In this document: piece by piece, positions 30,474 through 55,748 of the stretch
Layout: each line of letters starts with the position of its first letter
Position numbering within the stretch: the first letter of the stretch is position 1
Assembly (NCBI RefSeq): GCF_001194135.2
Contig: NC_068982.1
Coordinates: 130,168,212-130,224,286, forward strand
Direction of reading: 5' to 3'
Length of the DNA stretch: 56,075 bases
Source: Octopus bimaculoides
Lineage: Eukaryota
Position numbers and translations under genes: made by a program
The notes under the pieces: generated by a model
What the model saw: only the letters and a program-made list of their open reading frames with translations
Database searches by the model: none
Told to the model about the DNA's origin: nothing

Positions 30474-30505
30474 TCAGGTTGAAGATTCTACTTCTTGAGG
30501 TTCAC
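30474..30505 (-). CDS. EGFL7: EGFL7/8-like probable terminal coding exon
   Basis: Long polypyrimidine tract ending ttcttgcattgtctttcag; a phase-1 start completes TGT (Cys) and reads EPQEVESST then TGA. AATAAA occurs immediately after the stop and again at 30185-30190 on the minus strand. Best candidate found, but short, so less certain. Confidence 0.65.
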
Positions 30506-31109
30506 CTGAAAGACAATGCAAGAAGTATAAGAAAATGGTAAGACAAAAGAAGGAAAAAAAAAGAAAAAAGATTATAAAGTAATATTATATCTCGAAGAAA
30601 TATATATATATATATATATATANNNNNNNNNNNNNNNNNNNNNNNNNNNNNNNNNNNNNNNNNNNNNNNNNNNNNNNNNNNNNNNNNNNNNNNNNNNNNN
30701 NNNNNNNNNNNNNNNNNNNNNNNNNNNNNNNNNNNNNNNNNNNNNNNNNNNNNNNNNNNNNNNNNNNNNNNNNNNNNNNNNNNNNNNNNNNNNNNNNNNN
30801 NNNNNNNNNNNNNNNNNNNNNNNNNNNNNNNNNNNNNNNNNNNNNNNNNNNNNNNNNNNNNNNNNNNNNNNNNNNNNACACACACACACACACACACACA
30901 CACACACACACACACACACACACACACACACATGCATTATATAGTTTTGTTACAACAAACAGAATAGTTAGAATTCAGTACATTAGAAAATAAAATTTTC
31001 AATTTTAATCGGTAGAAAGTTACAAACGTGACACAAAGACCGAAAATTTCATGCATTACACTTATCAGACCGACTCATGTATGTGATGTGATATGTGTAT
31101 GTAGGATTA

Positions 31110-31510
31110 TTCTTTGAGTTTAGTTTAAGTTTTTCATGAGAGAGTTCAAGCCGGTTGCTAACAAAGCAACAAGACCTCTTGAGTTAAGAGAGTTCCCGGT
31201 GTTTGTGAATATGTGGTTGAGTTGATGTGTTGGTTGAACTGTCGATGCTTACACCCAAGTATGTGCAACTGTTCACATAAGTCTCACATGAAGAATTTCT
31301 GGAATGTCTTACAATTCTTCACTGTGCCGCTCATAGATTAGATGTGAAGAATCCGCGTCAGTTTTTTTGCTCTTTTCCTGTGAAATTAAGTGTTTCTAGG
31401 TTTTTGTGCAAATTTTGTGGTACGTAACCAAATGCACCTATGATGACAGATATAAATGAGAATTCATAGTCAGAGTACAAAAGCTGTAAGTTCCGCATTA
31501 ATTCGCCATA
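31110..31510 (-). mobile_element. R4/Dong-like (RLE) LINE 3' end
   Basis: DEIKKVYGELMRNLQLLYSDYEFSFISVIIGAFGYV...SGTVKNCKTFQKF; same family as 43200-43420. Confidence 0.75.
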
Positions 31511-33094
31511 AACTTTCTTTATTTCATCTTACTGAAGTCGATAAAATAGGTGCCAGTCAAGAAATAGGGTAGATGGTATCGACAAACTTCTCTTCAAAAT
31601 TTCTGGCCTTATGCTTAATTAGAAACAATTATTCGCAGACCTGACAGACAAAATCTTCTCACGGCATTTAGATGCGTCTTTTTACTTTCTGATTTCAAAT
31701 CCTACCAAGGCTAGTTTTGCTTTCTATTCTATCTCGAGTAAATTATATTTAAAAAAAAAACCTAGTCAGCTGGACTTGTTTTAACTATATGTATATTTTG
31801 CCTACTATACTTCATTCCCTTGCAAGACAACTCAATTTAAAGGAAAACTATTTGAAAATACACAATTTCTATTTGATCCTGCAATATTAATTTTTAATCG
31901 AATATTCCAGAAAGAATTACGATTCATTCTATATACGAAATGAGCCCTCACATTTGAAATGAGTTTGAGAAGTGTCATGCATGGAACTCTGCCCTTGAAT
32001 CTCTTTTGTAAATTTCTGCCAATTAAAAATAAAATACACGCGCTTGCGCGCGTATTTAAGAGAAATTTAATTATTGATGCTGATCGCTTGAACGACCTCG
32101 AAACCACACCGAAAGGACTGAGACAAATAAAAGTAAAGAAAATACGAACCTTTTAACACGTATCTTTCAACTCGTAAAACATAGGTTTCTGTCTTGTCAA
32201 AAGAAACTTAGTATATGTAGTTTTGTTTTAATTAAGACACATGGTCACAAATTTGTATGGGAGGATGATTAAGATTACTTGTGGTTCGTATCTTTTCAAG
32301 GGAATTGGAGCAGTAAATGACATGAATTATCTTTGATAGACAACTAAAATCTTGTCTGTGGACTTAGTTTGCTGAGAACTTTAAACCCGATTTTTTAAAA
32401 ATCCTTATCTTTTAGTCATGAAGGAAAGTAGCACAAGACACTTTACATGATTTCTGAAACTGGTGGGAAATAGGAAAGTATCCTCAAACCGGGGTCCCAT
32501 TGCTTGCAACAAAGTGGACTCAGTTAAGGGAACCGAAGGGTAATGGGTTGCCTACCATCCAAGTAGGCCATGGTACGATTTCAACCAGGACACAAAGAGA
32601 CAAAACAAATACTACAAGGTGCCAGGTCCGACATTCTTACAACTTCACCAACCCATTGTTCTTTTTTGTTGACTCTGAAAGGATGCAAGGCAAAGTTGAT
32701 CTCGGTGAGATTTAAATTCAGTGTGCAGAGAGTTAGAATAAACATCGCGAGACATTTTTAATGTAGAATACTTTTATTGGCACAAAGTATGGGTAATAAG
32801 TAACGAATTTCTGACACTAGCATAATTGCTGAGGCGTACTGAGAAGGATAAACGAAATGTTGTAAAATCAACGTTTTATTTCATTTAGAATTAACCAGAT
32901 CAAATATAGATACTGCAAAGTATTTACTCAAATGCCAATGTACAATTTGGCATTTGATTAAGTACTTTGCAGTATTTATATTTGCGAGTAATTCTGAATC
33001 ATACAGCGGCGTCAAATTAAACCTGTTTAGTCGAAGCTGGGTATAGTGGCTTATGTTGACTCTAATGAGAGACACGAATTTATCTTACGAAAAC

Positions 33095-33303
33095 TGAAGG
33101 GTTGGCAGAATCGTTATCGCACCGGGCAAAATCCTTAAAAGCATTTCTTCCGACTTTACGTTCTGAGTTCGAATACCACCGGGGCCAACTTTGCCTTTCA
33201 TCCTTTCGAGGTTGATAAAATAAGTACCAGTTGAGCACTGGAGTCGATATGATCGACTCACCAGCCCCGTAATTGCTGGCCTTGTGTCAAAATTTGAAAC
33301 CAA
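33095..33303 (+). mobile_element. SINE family A variant in the last intron
   Basis: GGCAGAATCGTT...CTGAGTTCGAAT...CTTTCATCCTTTCGAGGTTGATAAAATAAGTACCAG. Confidence 0.8.
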
Positions 33304-33558
33304 TATATAAGCAAGAACATAACTTAAGCACCTCTTTTTGCTCACGGCTCACAAAATTCGAAGCTCATGGAAGTATAAATGTTATCAGTAAGACATGCAG
33401 TTATAGAAGACAAAACACTAAAGAACTCAACGCAAAGGTAAAATACTATTTCAGATGTTCTAAGTACTTTCGTGTTTTGTTTTAACTGTAAAAGTAATTA
33501 CTATTTATAAGTTACGGTGATATTTCCGCAATATTCATCAATATAAAGTAAAACTTAC

Positions 33559-33778
33559 ACTCTTCTATTCTTTCTTCAAGTAAACCAATTTGTTGTCTCA
33601 TAGATCGGATCATTCGCTCCACCGACTTCAACGATTTATCGGTGATTTCAACTGGTTCCCAGTCGACAGGTATTTTCTCTTTTATCGTTTCTGCAGGTTT
33701 TTTCCTTTCTTGCTGTTTTTGTTTCATACATTGCTTTAAATTTTGGTAAAGTTCGGACACATTGTTATGTACTTCTAT
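33559..33778 (-). CDS. EGFL7: EGFL7/8-like exon: C-terminal coiled-coil region
   Basis: Acceptor catatattcccag and donor GAGT|gtaagt; 220 nt, phase 0 to 1. Reads IEVHNNVSELYQNLKQCMKQKQQERKKPAETIKEKIPVDWEPVEITDKSLKSVERMIRSMRQQIGLLEERIEE(C). The end resembles EGFL7 RIDSLSEQISFLEEQLGSC (recalled). Confidence 0.9.
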
Positions 33779-53902: not shown

Positions 53903-54002
53903 CACAACCATACGCGCGCACACACACACACACACACACACACACACACACACACACACACACACACACACACACACACACACAAATAAATAACCTACTT
54001 AC

Positions 54003-54121
54003 GTTTGAGACATGTATTTTCTCTTTGAGAATGCTGACTCCATCCGGGACAACACGTGTACATCACTTGATGTTCTGTTTGAAGTCGTGTGACGTAACGG
54101 ACAATTTTTTGTTGAACAAGC
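54003..54121 (-). CDS. EGFL7: EGFL7/8-like exon: second half of the EMI domain
   Basis: Acceptor ccttccttttcttcag and donor AAAC|gtaagt; 119 nt, phase 2 to 1. Reads LVQQKIVRYVTRLQTEHQVMYTCCPGWSQHSQRENTCLK(P), including the EMI hallmark CCPGW. Confidence 0.95.
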
Positions 54122-54418
54122 CTGAAGAAAAGGAAGGTGACATTTAAATAACGAAACATACCCCTTATTGAGTGAGCTCCAAAGGTTTGATAGTAGTGTT
54201 AAGTAAAAAGATGGATTAAAACTATAATCAAGCCTAAACGACGATATTACCAATGTTTTCCCATTTTTAAATCGAAAGGTTTTCATATGACGGAAATGTC
54301 TCAATTATTTCTTGAATATAAAGCAACCATGTAGAGGTTTGGGGGCCAGCGAAGACGGTTGTAACGTTTAACAGTATTTGATATGCCATTGTATCTACGT
54401 CTAGGTCAATATCTGTTA

Positions 54419-55312
54419 CGTGGTCTGATCAATAAGGATCCGGACTGTTGCCACAATAATAAAGCTAAAGCACGCAGAGTAAAAGCCGCTTGGCACTGAT
54501 TGACTTTGAAGTCTCCTATGCATGTGCACTAAGTTTTAACGTTCTAGCTCACTTCCGCTGTTTACAGCAGGGCTTGGAAAGAAGGCGTGTAGCGTGTGAT
54601 CGTCACATTGACCATGACAGAAAGTTGAGCAGGGCATCTGCATCAAATTTTGCCAAAAGCTTGGCGATACCTGCTCAGAGGCCTTCGCAAAGTTTTCAAA
54701 AAAGTTTTCATCACTCGACACAATCAAGGAGATCTTGTGTAACTGAAACCCGAGTGTCTTTTTTGGTTAGCTGAAAGTAATCTTGGCACAAACTTGGCAG
54801 ACACGCGTCTCATACCCAAATCTTCAGTGATAATGGACTGAACTGAACTGTAACTAATCTGCACCTCCTCTGATAATTCACGGATGGTGATTCGACGATT
54901 TCCCCTCACAGCTGCACGCACATCTGCGGTATATTTCTCAGTTCTGCTGGTTGCGGGTCTCCCAGAATGTTCGTCAATATCGACATTTTTTCAACCAGCT
55001 TGGAAACGTCTCAATCACTCGTACACTTATGTGCGGCTCATAACCTCCTCTCCATACACTTTCTGCAACTTTGCGTAGGCCGTTGAACAGGTATCGCTAT
55101 GACAACTTTTTCTGTCATGGTCAATGTGACGATCACACGCTGCTCACGTTCCTTCCGAGCGCTACTATAAACAGCGGAGGTGAGCTAGAGCGTTAAAACT
55201 TAGTGCGTACGTACAACAGAGTTCAAGGTTAATCTTTGCCAACTGGCTTCACTCTGCGTACTTTAGCTTCGTTACTATGCGAACAGTCTGGATACTTATT
55301 GATCAGACTTCG
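54419..55312. mobile_element. Palindromic non-autonomous mariner derivative made of two 5' ends
   Basis: TA-flanked TIRs CG(T/A)(G/A)GTCTGATCAATAAG. Both arms carry the 5' UTR and transposase start (ICIKFCQKLGDTCSEA on +; RRITIRELSEEV...RRVSAKFVPRLL on -). Confidence 0.9.
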
Positions 55313-55616
55313 TATTCCTCCATTACATATATTTTTTATAATTTATGTATTTTCTTTTATTGCGTTTCTTTTTGTTTTATTCGAATCCCTTTAAAACATA
55401 ATACGCAGTTTCTAACATCTTCACATCATACTTTGTTGTATTATGGTATGCTGTATATGTATATCTTATGTGTATTTAAAAAATATTTATTATCTCTGGC
55501 CCCAAACCTAGGTCTGTTCCATCAAGTCAACCTGAAAATATTAACAACAGTATTAACAATGTGTAGCTTCGTATGGCGGCAGAGATAATCGATGAATAAG
55601 CAAAATTCAGGCTTAC

Positions 55617-55748
55617 TTTAATGTGGAGCAATATCCAGTCACAGATGATCTACATGGTCTCATAGCTCGCTGATATATGGGATGTGAAATGATTTCTTGC
55701 TCTCGAATTGGTGTTTTGACCACCCTCCGCTTTTGACAAATGTGACGT
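55617..55748 (-). CDS. EGFL7: EGFL7/8-like gene, exon: first half of the EMI domain (first exon visible; upstream signal-peptide exon presumably outside the window)
   Basis: Acceptor ttatttctttgtatcttag and donor AA|gtaagc; 132 nt, phase 2 to 2. Reads RHICQKRRVVKTPIREQEIISHPIYQRAMRPCRSSVTGYCSTL(K), matching the EMI N-terminal pattern (R.C...YQ....C...CST). EGFL7 versus EGFL8 cannot be resolved; probably a co-orthologue. Confidence 0.9.

Follow-up and report, generated by a model that had tools for sequence, protein, structure and literature searches.

The question raised by this locus is whether a series of short open stretches on the minus strand of Octopus bimaculoides DNA, spread between positions 55748 and 30474 of a 56,075-nucleotide stretch (hereafter the window), forms a single gene of the EGFL7/8 family, and whether such a gene has any bearing on the closed circulation of octopuses. 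The window corresponds letter for letter to a reverse-strand segment of chromosome CM046602.1 in assembly GCA_001194135.2, in agreement with the cephalopod origin proposed in an earlier note made from the letters alone; it is AT-rich (36.5% GC), rich in microsatellites, and interrupted by 13 runs of N. The locus is almost certainly an ordinary, annotated O. bimaculoides gene and a member of the EGFL7/8 family found across bilaterians.

Translation of stop-free stretches on the minus strand gives recognizable parts of EMI, EGF, and calcium-binding EGF (cbEGF) domains, and a splice model joins these stretches as seven coding exons running from 55748 to 30474. The acceptor of every window exon is an AG preceded by a pyrimidine tract, all six donors are GT (extended to GTAAG in five and to GTCAG in the sixth), the phases are compatible (entry in phase 2, then 2, 1, 1, 1, 0, 1), and the spliced frame continues for 269 codons without a stop until a TGA at 30476-30474. 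The first exon in the window is coding exon 2 of the gene (55748-55617, minus strand like all features of the gene, 132 nt, phase 2 to 2) and encodes the N-terminal half of EMI (G^RHICQKRRVV...CSTLK, the caret marking an intron position); its translation is 100% identical to residues 40-83 of XP_014779739.1, and gorilla/human EGFL7 has introns at the two positions that border it, RPG^R and CSTx[K/R]. Coding exon 3 (54121-54003, 119 nt, leaving in phase 1) supplies the C-terminal half of EMI with the CCPGW motif and is followed by a 12.4-kb intron (54002-41584) that holds transposon remnants and three assembly gaps and no coding exon, as judged from collinearity with Octopus sinensis and from an RNA contig. 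The first EGF-like domain, with six cysteines and no calcium-binding consensus (P^VCSNPCQNGGECGAPNKCICPKQWTDKFCQT), is encoded by coding exon 4 (41583-41488, 96 nt, phase 1 to 1), and the cbEGF (DVNEC...) by coding exon 5 (37877-37755, 123 nt), a symmetric phase 1-1 cassette. Coding exon 6 (34846-34758, 89 nt, leaving in phase 0) encodes the beginning of the first long helix as well as a CLTC motif, while coding exon 7 (33778-33559, 220 nt, leaving in phase 1) carries the remainder of that helix, a low-confidence linker, and a second helix bearing a degenerate family motif, SMRQQIGLLEERIEE, as compared to the consensus SLSEQIxxLEExL. The last intron (33558-30506, 3.05 kb) contains the gap 30623-30877 and was assessed with the same O. 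sinensis collinearity and RNA contig. It leads to the coding part of the last exon (30505-30474, 32 nt), which reads C^EPQEVESST plus the TGA stop and whose split Cys codon has the position and phase of the first Cys in human ...GSC^SCKKDS. Alignment of the RNA contig beyond the stop codon gave the 3' untranslated region (UTR) a minimum extent of 30473-30201. The seven-exon structure is not due to chance, because its translation matches O. bimaculoides RefSeq proteins with 100% identity and its exon lengths are identical in O. sinensis.

The annotated 39-residue N-terminus joined to the seven-exon translation gives a protein of 308 aa that is verbatim XP_014779739.1 (UniProt A0A0L8GN91), named in the database "EGFL7 isoform X1 [Octopus bimaculoides]". 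The gene is therefore already known, being listed as exactly this protein by NCBI and UniProt, and the description of it as hidden from the open reading frame (ORF) track does not hold: it is a normal split eukaryotic gene. The seven-exon gene proposed in the earlier note was right to the base in its coordinates, AG/GT ends, phases, and 269-codon frame, and was incomplete at the 5' end, where the signal-peptide exon is missing. That exon, the first coding one (aa 1-39), is located outside the window, at a distance of 21.1 kb upstream of the exon with which the window model starts, and tblastn did not find the annotated N-terminus in the window. The N-terminus starts MFTPLLSSILTQRPALQFLCIVMFLTASIDA and is hydrophobic, with residues 13-32 modeled as a helix, and on the strength of its appearance by eye and of this predicted helix the product would carry a putative signal peptide.

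Membership of the EGFL7/8 family, as the earlier note had proposed, was supported by domain content, alignment, and gene structure. Residues 1-73 of the model matched the whole Pfam EMI profile (PF07546, positions 1-69) at 32.2 bits (cut-off 25), and EGF_CA was matched at 40.7 bits (cut-off 27); the first EGF domain gave EGF_2 at 15.7 bits, below the cut-off, and its six cysteines align and are invariant in the family alignment, as are the EMI cysteines and CCPGW. The cbEGF retains the calcium-binding and hydroxylation consensus (DVNEC ...), and Pfam found no domains in the protein other than EMI, EGF, and cbEGF. With the EMI and EGF_CA matches above their cut-offs and the helices of an AlphaFold model, the proposed domain order EMI-EGF-cbEGF-helical tail was borne out. 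The octopus ortholog matched human EGFL7 (a query 100% identical to the database entries for Homo and Gorilla) in BLASTP at 5e-36 with 29% identity, and the alignment is collinear from the RPGR-x-VC start of EMI through the C-terminal Cys. Exact spliced mapping was obtained for O. sinensis, O. bimaculoides, gorilla (whose protein is that of human), and a second octopus copy (paralog B, described below), and revealed eight coding exons each in octopus and gorilla EGFL7, with intron phases 2,2,1,1,1,0,1. For five of the seven introns the codons can be shown to be homologous (RPG^R, CSTx[K/R], the residue preceding the first Cys of EGF, the Asp of DV[ND]EC, and the C-terminal Cys); the remaining two agree in phase and order inside a linker that aligns poorly.

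An exhaustive HMMER search with the EMI domain only, covering 1.84 billion representative proteins at E <= 0.001, returned 52 matches, which apart from two repeat artifacts measured 58-540 aa (most of them 200-480). On visual inspection the full-length matches had the layout EMI-EGF-cbEGF with a helical tail, and the others were fragments; the named ones are EGFL7/8 of Patella (limpet), Haliotis, bivalves, Tachypleus (horseshoe crab), Hermetia (fly), Saccoglossus (acorn worm), and Branchiostoma (amphioxus). A profile of the invertebrate family had fish EGFL7 as its best vertebrate match (201 bits, 86% coverage) and EGFEM1 as the next (102 bits, 36% coverage). The vertebrate comparison drew on EGFL7 sequences and the tree was built by neighbor-joining, which followed phylum-level relationships. 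The octopus protein resembles vertebrate EGFL7 (VE-statin) and EGFL8 in its putative signal peptide, EMI, EGF, cbEGF, and predicted helical tail ending in Cys, and in a size of about 270-310 aa, whereas the gene spans ~46 kb compared to ~4 kb for vertebrate EGFL7 and, unlike the latter, has the CLTC motif after the cbEGF that is found in other invertebrate members. The same domain order and conserved cysteines occur in EGFL7/8-like proteins of Patella, Lottia, Haliotis, bivalves, Ridgeia, and nemerteans as well as in those of horseshoe crab, spider, insects, Saccoglossus, and amphioxus; these invertebrate members share 30-37% identity with the octopus protein, vary in tail length, and in many cases contain Thr/Pro-rich inserts.

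The gene span is interrupted by four assembly gaps, three of which (47288-48153, 48544-48816, and 51113-51122) lie inside the 12.4-kb intron between 54003 and 41583, while the gap in the last intron lies 118 nt upstream of the last acceptor. All four are intronic and none touches an exon, so the continuity of the frame is independent of gap length. The orthologous O. sinensis locus (L001; 72 kb, free of N) is collinear with the window on both flanks of every gap; its intervals corresponding to the four gaps measure ~240, 1020, 160, and 2200 nt, the last-intron gap being the one of ~160 nt, and no exon of the O. sinensis gene model lies inside these intervals. Nucleotide identity between the two species is 94-99% in exons and ~85-94% in aligned intron blocks. 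Transcript evidence came from an intron-less RNA contig of 1,974 nt (L004) in SRR3401912, an RNA library described merely as an "octopus" meta-transcriptome (PMC11662614), which therefore carries no tissue information. The contig aligned to the spliced window exons as a single high-scoring segment pair with no indels at the six junctions and continued past the stop codon to window position 30201. The coding-exon number is also the same in human-type EGFL7 and paralog B.

An AlphaFold model made on the O. sinensis ortholog (92% identical) had a mean pLDDT of 81.6 and showed a beta-rich EMI at residues 42-106 with pLDDT >90, two EGF domains, a 48-residue helix at 202-249 (pLDDT ~90), a disordered linker, and a second helix at 272-298. 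Foldseek against PDB retrieved tandem-EGF proteins only (NELL2, Notch1, and factor VII/X) and no solved EMI fold, and the result was accordingly uninformative on function. The C-terminal tail comprises two long predicted helices, and its family motif is recognizable and degenerate (SMRQQIGLLEERIEEC-EP) compared to SLSEQIxxLEExLxxCxC. A working model can be proposed in which the gene would give a small secreted product, with its signal peptide supplied by the exon ~21 kb upstream, that probably sits in the extracellular matrix. The EMI domain and the EGF/cbEGF pair would serve protein-protein contacts, and the two long C-terminal helices and the terminal cysteine would probably mediate oligomerization. 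The contacts of vertebrate EGFL7 include Notch receptors and matrix components, and by analogy the octopus protein may modulate Notch signaling or matrix assembly.

The window gene is accompanied by a second family member, paralog B ("EGFL8", XP_014779737.1, 297 aa), on the same strand at CM046602.1 130,016,999-130,080,312 (L006; in O. sinensis, L003), 118 kb downstream in O. bimaculoides and 180 kb downstream in O. sinensis. The two share architecture, eight exons, and phase structure, and differ in being only 34% identical; paralog B keeps a canonical SLSEQIGILEEKL...CSC end, unlike the window gene, evolves ~2.7 times more slowly, and is nearer to vertebrate EGFL7. Between O. bimaculoides and O. 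sinensis the proteins differ by 8.2% for the window copy and 3.0% for B, and from Argonauta by 29% and 16%, respectively; against human and fish EGFL7, B scored 134 and 157 bits compared to 103 and 113 bits for the window copy. On these sequence comparisons the window gene is the faster-evolving member of two same-strand paralogs. Two adjacent EGFL7/8-like genes are also present in limpets, namely Patella SNE40_000465/464 (P0152/P0179) and Lottia 174251/174250 (P0168/P0218). Reciprocal BLAST paired B with one gastropod type and the window copy (A), more weakly, with the other, and in the neighbor-joining tree both cephalopod clades had 100% bootstrap while the relation of A and B to the two gastropod copies had values of 24-58. 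The BLAST pairing hints that the A/B pair may derive from an old molluscan tandem duplication that left one copy free to diverge. The octopus pair is not the vertebrate EGFL7/EGFL8 pair, a product of the second whole-genome duplication (bioRxiv 10.1101/2022.11.23.517662).

Two rival accounts concern the identity and integrity of the gene, and both appear extremely improbable. One holds that it belongs to another EMI family (EMILIN/multimerin, MEGF10/11/Draper/Nimrod, or EGFEM1, all of which have an N-terminal EMI with CCPGW) and is merely EGFL7-like, a view that could draw on a first word-indexed search in which MEGF6, EGFL6, matrilin, and fibulin followed the cephalopod matches, and on inconsistent names of relatives such as "BMP1" in Mactra, "SCUBE1" in Lineus, and "cartilage matrix protein-like" in Physella. 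However, those matches cover 13-46% of the query, corresponding to the EGF domains, and the 52 matches of the exhaustive EMI-only search included nothing with the size or architecture of an EMILIN, multimerin, MEGF, or Nimrod protein and no member of EMILIN/multimerin, MEGF10/11/Draper/Nimrod, or EGFEM1 at E <= 0.001. EMILIN/multimerin proteins have gC1q and a long coiled coil of ~1000 aa, whereas the octopus protein has 308 aa and no gC1q match; MEGF10/11/Draper/Nimrod proteins have many EGF repeats and a transmembrane segment, whereas the octopus protein has two EGF domains and stops after the helical tail, with no collagen, transmembrane, or multi-EGF region. As all seven introns match EGFL7 and the protein is collinear with human EGFL7 from end to end, assignment to another EMI family is already largely refuted, and the grouping with EMILIN, MEGF, or Nimrod that the earlier note had named as a refuting outcome was not found in the EMI-only search, the gene structure, or the profile scores. 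The other account treats the seven-exon model as an assembly artifact, with exons lost in the N gaps or sequence mis-joined across them. Its basis is that the four gaps in the gene span persist in the v2 chromosome assembly and that the window end adjoins a 6,142-N gap; yet every gap is intronic, the O. sinensis locus, itself free of gaps, shows collinearity across each of them and equal exon lengths, the RNA contig has no insertion at the junctions, and human-type EGFL7 and paralog B share the coding-exon count, which leaves this explanation with very little probability.

Several points weigh against the working model, and a third account accepts EGFL7/8 membership and questions what the window copy still does. 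In Octopus and Argonauta SMRQQI stands in place of SLSEQI and the C-terminal CxC has been deprived of its second Cys; the octopus protein also lacks the integrin-binding RGD of human EGFL7. Coiled-coil oligomerization was read from the two predicted helices alone, and the signal peptide was assigned on visual inspection and a predicted helix rather than by a dedicated predictor. The dN/dS of the window copy against O. sinensis is ~0.81, based on 7 synonymous and 23 non-synonymous changes, and the literature searched contained no expression, localization, or binding data for this gene. The window paralog might accordingly be decaying or function-shifted, so that inference from vertebrate EGFL7 would mislead and neighbor B would hold the ancestral role, a possibility for which the dN/dS, the larger protein divergence than in B from both O. 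sinensis and Argonauta, the better scores of B against human and fish EGFL7, and the altered tail all speak. It is nevertheless an unlikely one, if clearly less remote than the previous two, as Octopus bimaculoides, O. sinensis, O. vulgaris, and Argonauta all have an uninterrupted frame, the domain cysteines and the calcium-binding consensus are all retained, exon lengths are conserved, the gene is transcribed and correctly spliced in the octopus RNA library, and the substitution counts are small.

The remaining question is whether an EGFL7/8 gene in an octopus speaks of blood vessels, since the earlier note had suggested convergence or deep homology with the vertebrate endothelium. The family is "present throughout most metazoans" and EGFL7 and EGFL8 arose in the vertebrate 2R duplication (bioRxiv 10.1101/2022.11.23.517662), and members were found here in limpets, bivalves, insects, horseshoe crab, nemerteans, and amphioxus, including many animals with an open circulation. 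Egfl7 knockouts that spare miR-126 are phenotypically normal, and the vascular phenotype has been assigned to this intronic microRNA, which is restricted to Olfactores (bioRxiv 10.1101/2022.11.23.517662). Whereas vertebrate EGFL7 has mir-126 in the intron after the cbEGF exon, there is none in the homologous octopus intron, and Rfam searches of the window and of the O. sinensis locus, which has no gaps, did not find it at the gathering score or at E <= 1; the positive control, gorilla mir-126, scored 93 bits at L002 12342-12414, in the intron after the cbEGF exon. Given the restriction to Olfactores, this absence is as expected, and mir-126 does not define the protein family. The RGD of human EGFL7 lies in the first EGF (GWRGDTC), where octopus A reads KQWTDKFC and B reads GWAGPTC. 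An acyltransferase (AGPAT) gene lies 1.4 kb from gorilla EGFL7 and none adjoins the octopus gene; the check on Notch or AGPAT neighbors suggested in the earlier note turned out negative, with no further gene of any kind called within 10 kb on either side in O. sinensis and O. bimaculoides. In the literature searched on EGFL7 in octopus, cephalopod, squid, or mollusc, no study of cephalopod EGFL7 was found. With the family pan-bilaterian and present in open circulations, and with no mir-126, no RGD, and no Notch or AGPAT gene within 10 kb, the vascular convergence or deep homology reading is weakened, being without support and less likely than proposed. As the family occurs in most bilaterian animals, the presence of the gene says nothing yet about the evolution of octopus vessels, and paralog B is an equally good candidate for a vascular role. 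Expression of one tandem paralog, either the window copy or its conservative neighbor, in vessel-lining cells or in haemocyte/white-body precursors is improbable on present evidence.

Further observations concern the transcripts, names, and surroundings of the gene. Isoform X3 (XP_052821567.1, P0003) skips the cbEGF exon, with all shared exons identical, and joins ...FCQT straight to VCLTC, the junction of exons 4 and 6, to give an EMI-EGF-tail protein. Isoform X2 has an alternative first exon that encodes merely "MQ" and hence has no signal peptide; an ATGCA^GTGAGT site matching this exon lies outside the window in O. bimaculoides (L005 13335). The database names are inconsistent, with X2 labeled "EGFL8 isoform X2" and X1 and X3 "EGFL7", O. 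vulgaris swaps them (this gene being "growth factor 8" and its neighbor "growth factor 7"), and relatives are labeled BMP1, SCUBE1, or cartilage matrix protein-like in their sources; the names given to members of this family are arbitrary. The window end at 56075 adjoins the 6,142-N gap (L005 24774-30915), and over half of the 21-kb first intron is unread sequence in the v2 assembly. An ATG at 55791, opening a signal-peptide-like ORF (MLLNYFLVLFLCILDV..., window 55749-55830) across the acceptor of the first window exon, was rejected as the true start and attributed to chance because the ORF is out of frame with the exon, the intervening 22-nt GT..AG is too short for an intron, and the real N-terminus lies elsewhere. 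An AATAAA hexamer stands immediately after the stop codon (window 30466-30476; TGAAAATAAAAC) and is probably not the main poly(A) signal, since a related octopus transcript extends at least 270 nt beyond it.

Decayed mariner/Mos1-type fragments occur both within the large intron and beyond the 3' end of the gene, at 46274-46834 on the plus strand and at 54727-54990, 50221-50670, 25956-26246, and 17559-17906 on the minus strand. A Pfam scan of ten transposon-like ORFs gave three weak helix-turn-helix matches. HTH_48 exceeded its cut-off at 46274-46495 and at 17559-17906, and the remaining fragments were identified by eye. Rfam matches to mir-297, mir-466, mir-1277, mir-3149, and mir-5014 (window 33885-33962, 35179-35275, 41834-42241, 43890-43972, 45990-46109, 47240-47290, and 51074-51161) were far below their gathering scores, fell in TG/TA microsatellites, and were rejected as composition artifacts.

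The earlier assessment of the locus was a correct rediscovery as far as the window gene goes and overlooked a second, more conservative paralog. As it stands, the gene matters little, being an annotated member of a family present in most metazoans, and the presence of an EGFL7 homolog alone is not vascular evidence; any convergence with closed circulation would concern both paralogs. The gains are modest and consist of an eight-exon, phase-exact structure common to octopus and human, an octopus locus without the miR-126 that is credited with most of the vertebrate vascular knockout phenotype, and a linked paralog pair in octopods with unequal evolutionary rates. Should one of the two copies prove to be expressed in vessel-lining cells or in haemocyte/white-body precursors, an ancient bilaterian matrix gene would have been independently recruited to a closed circulation without miR-126.

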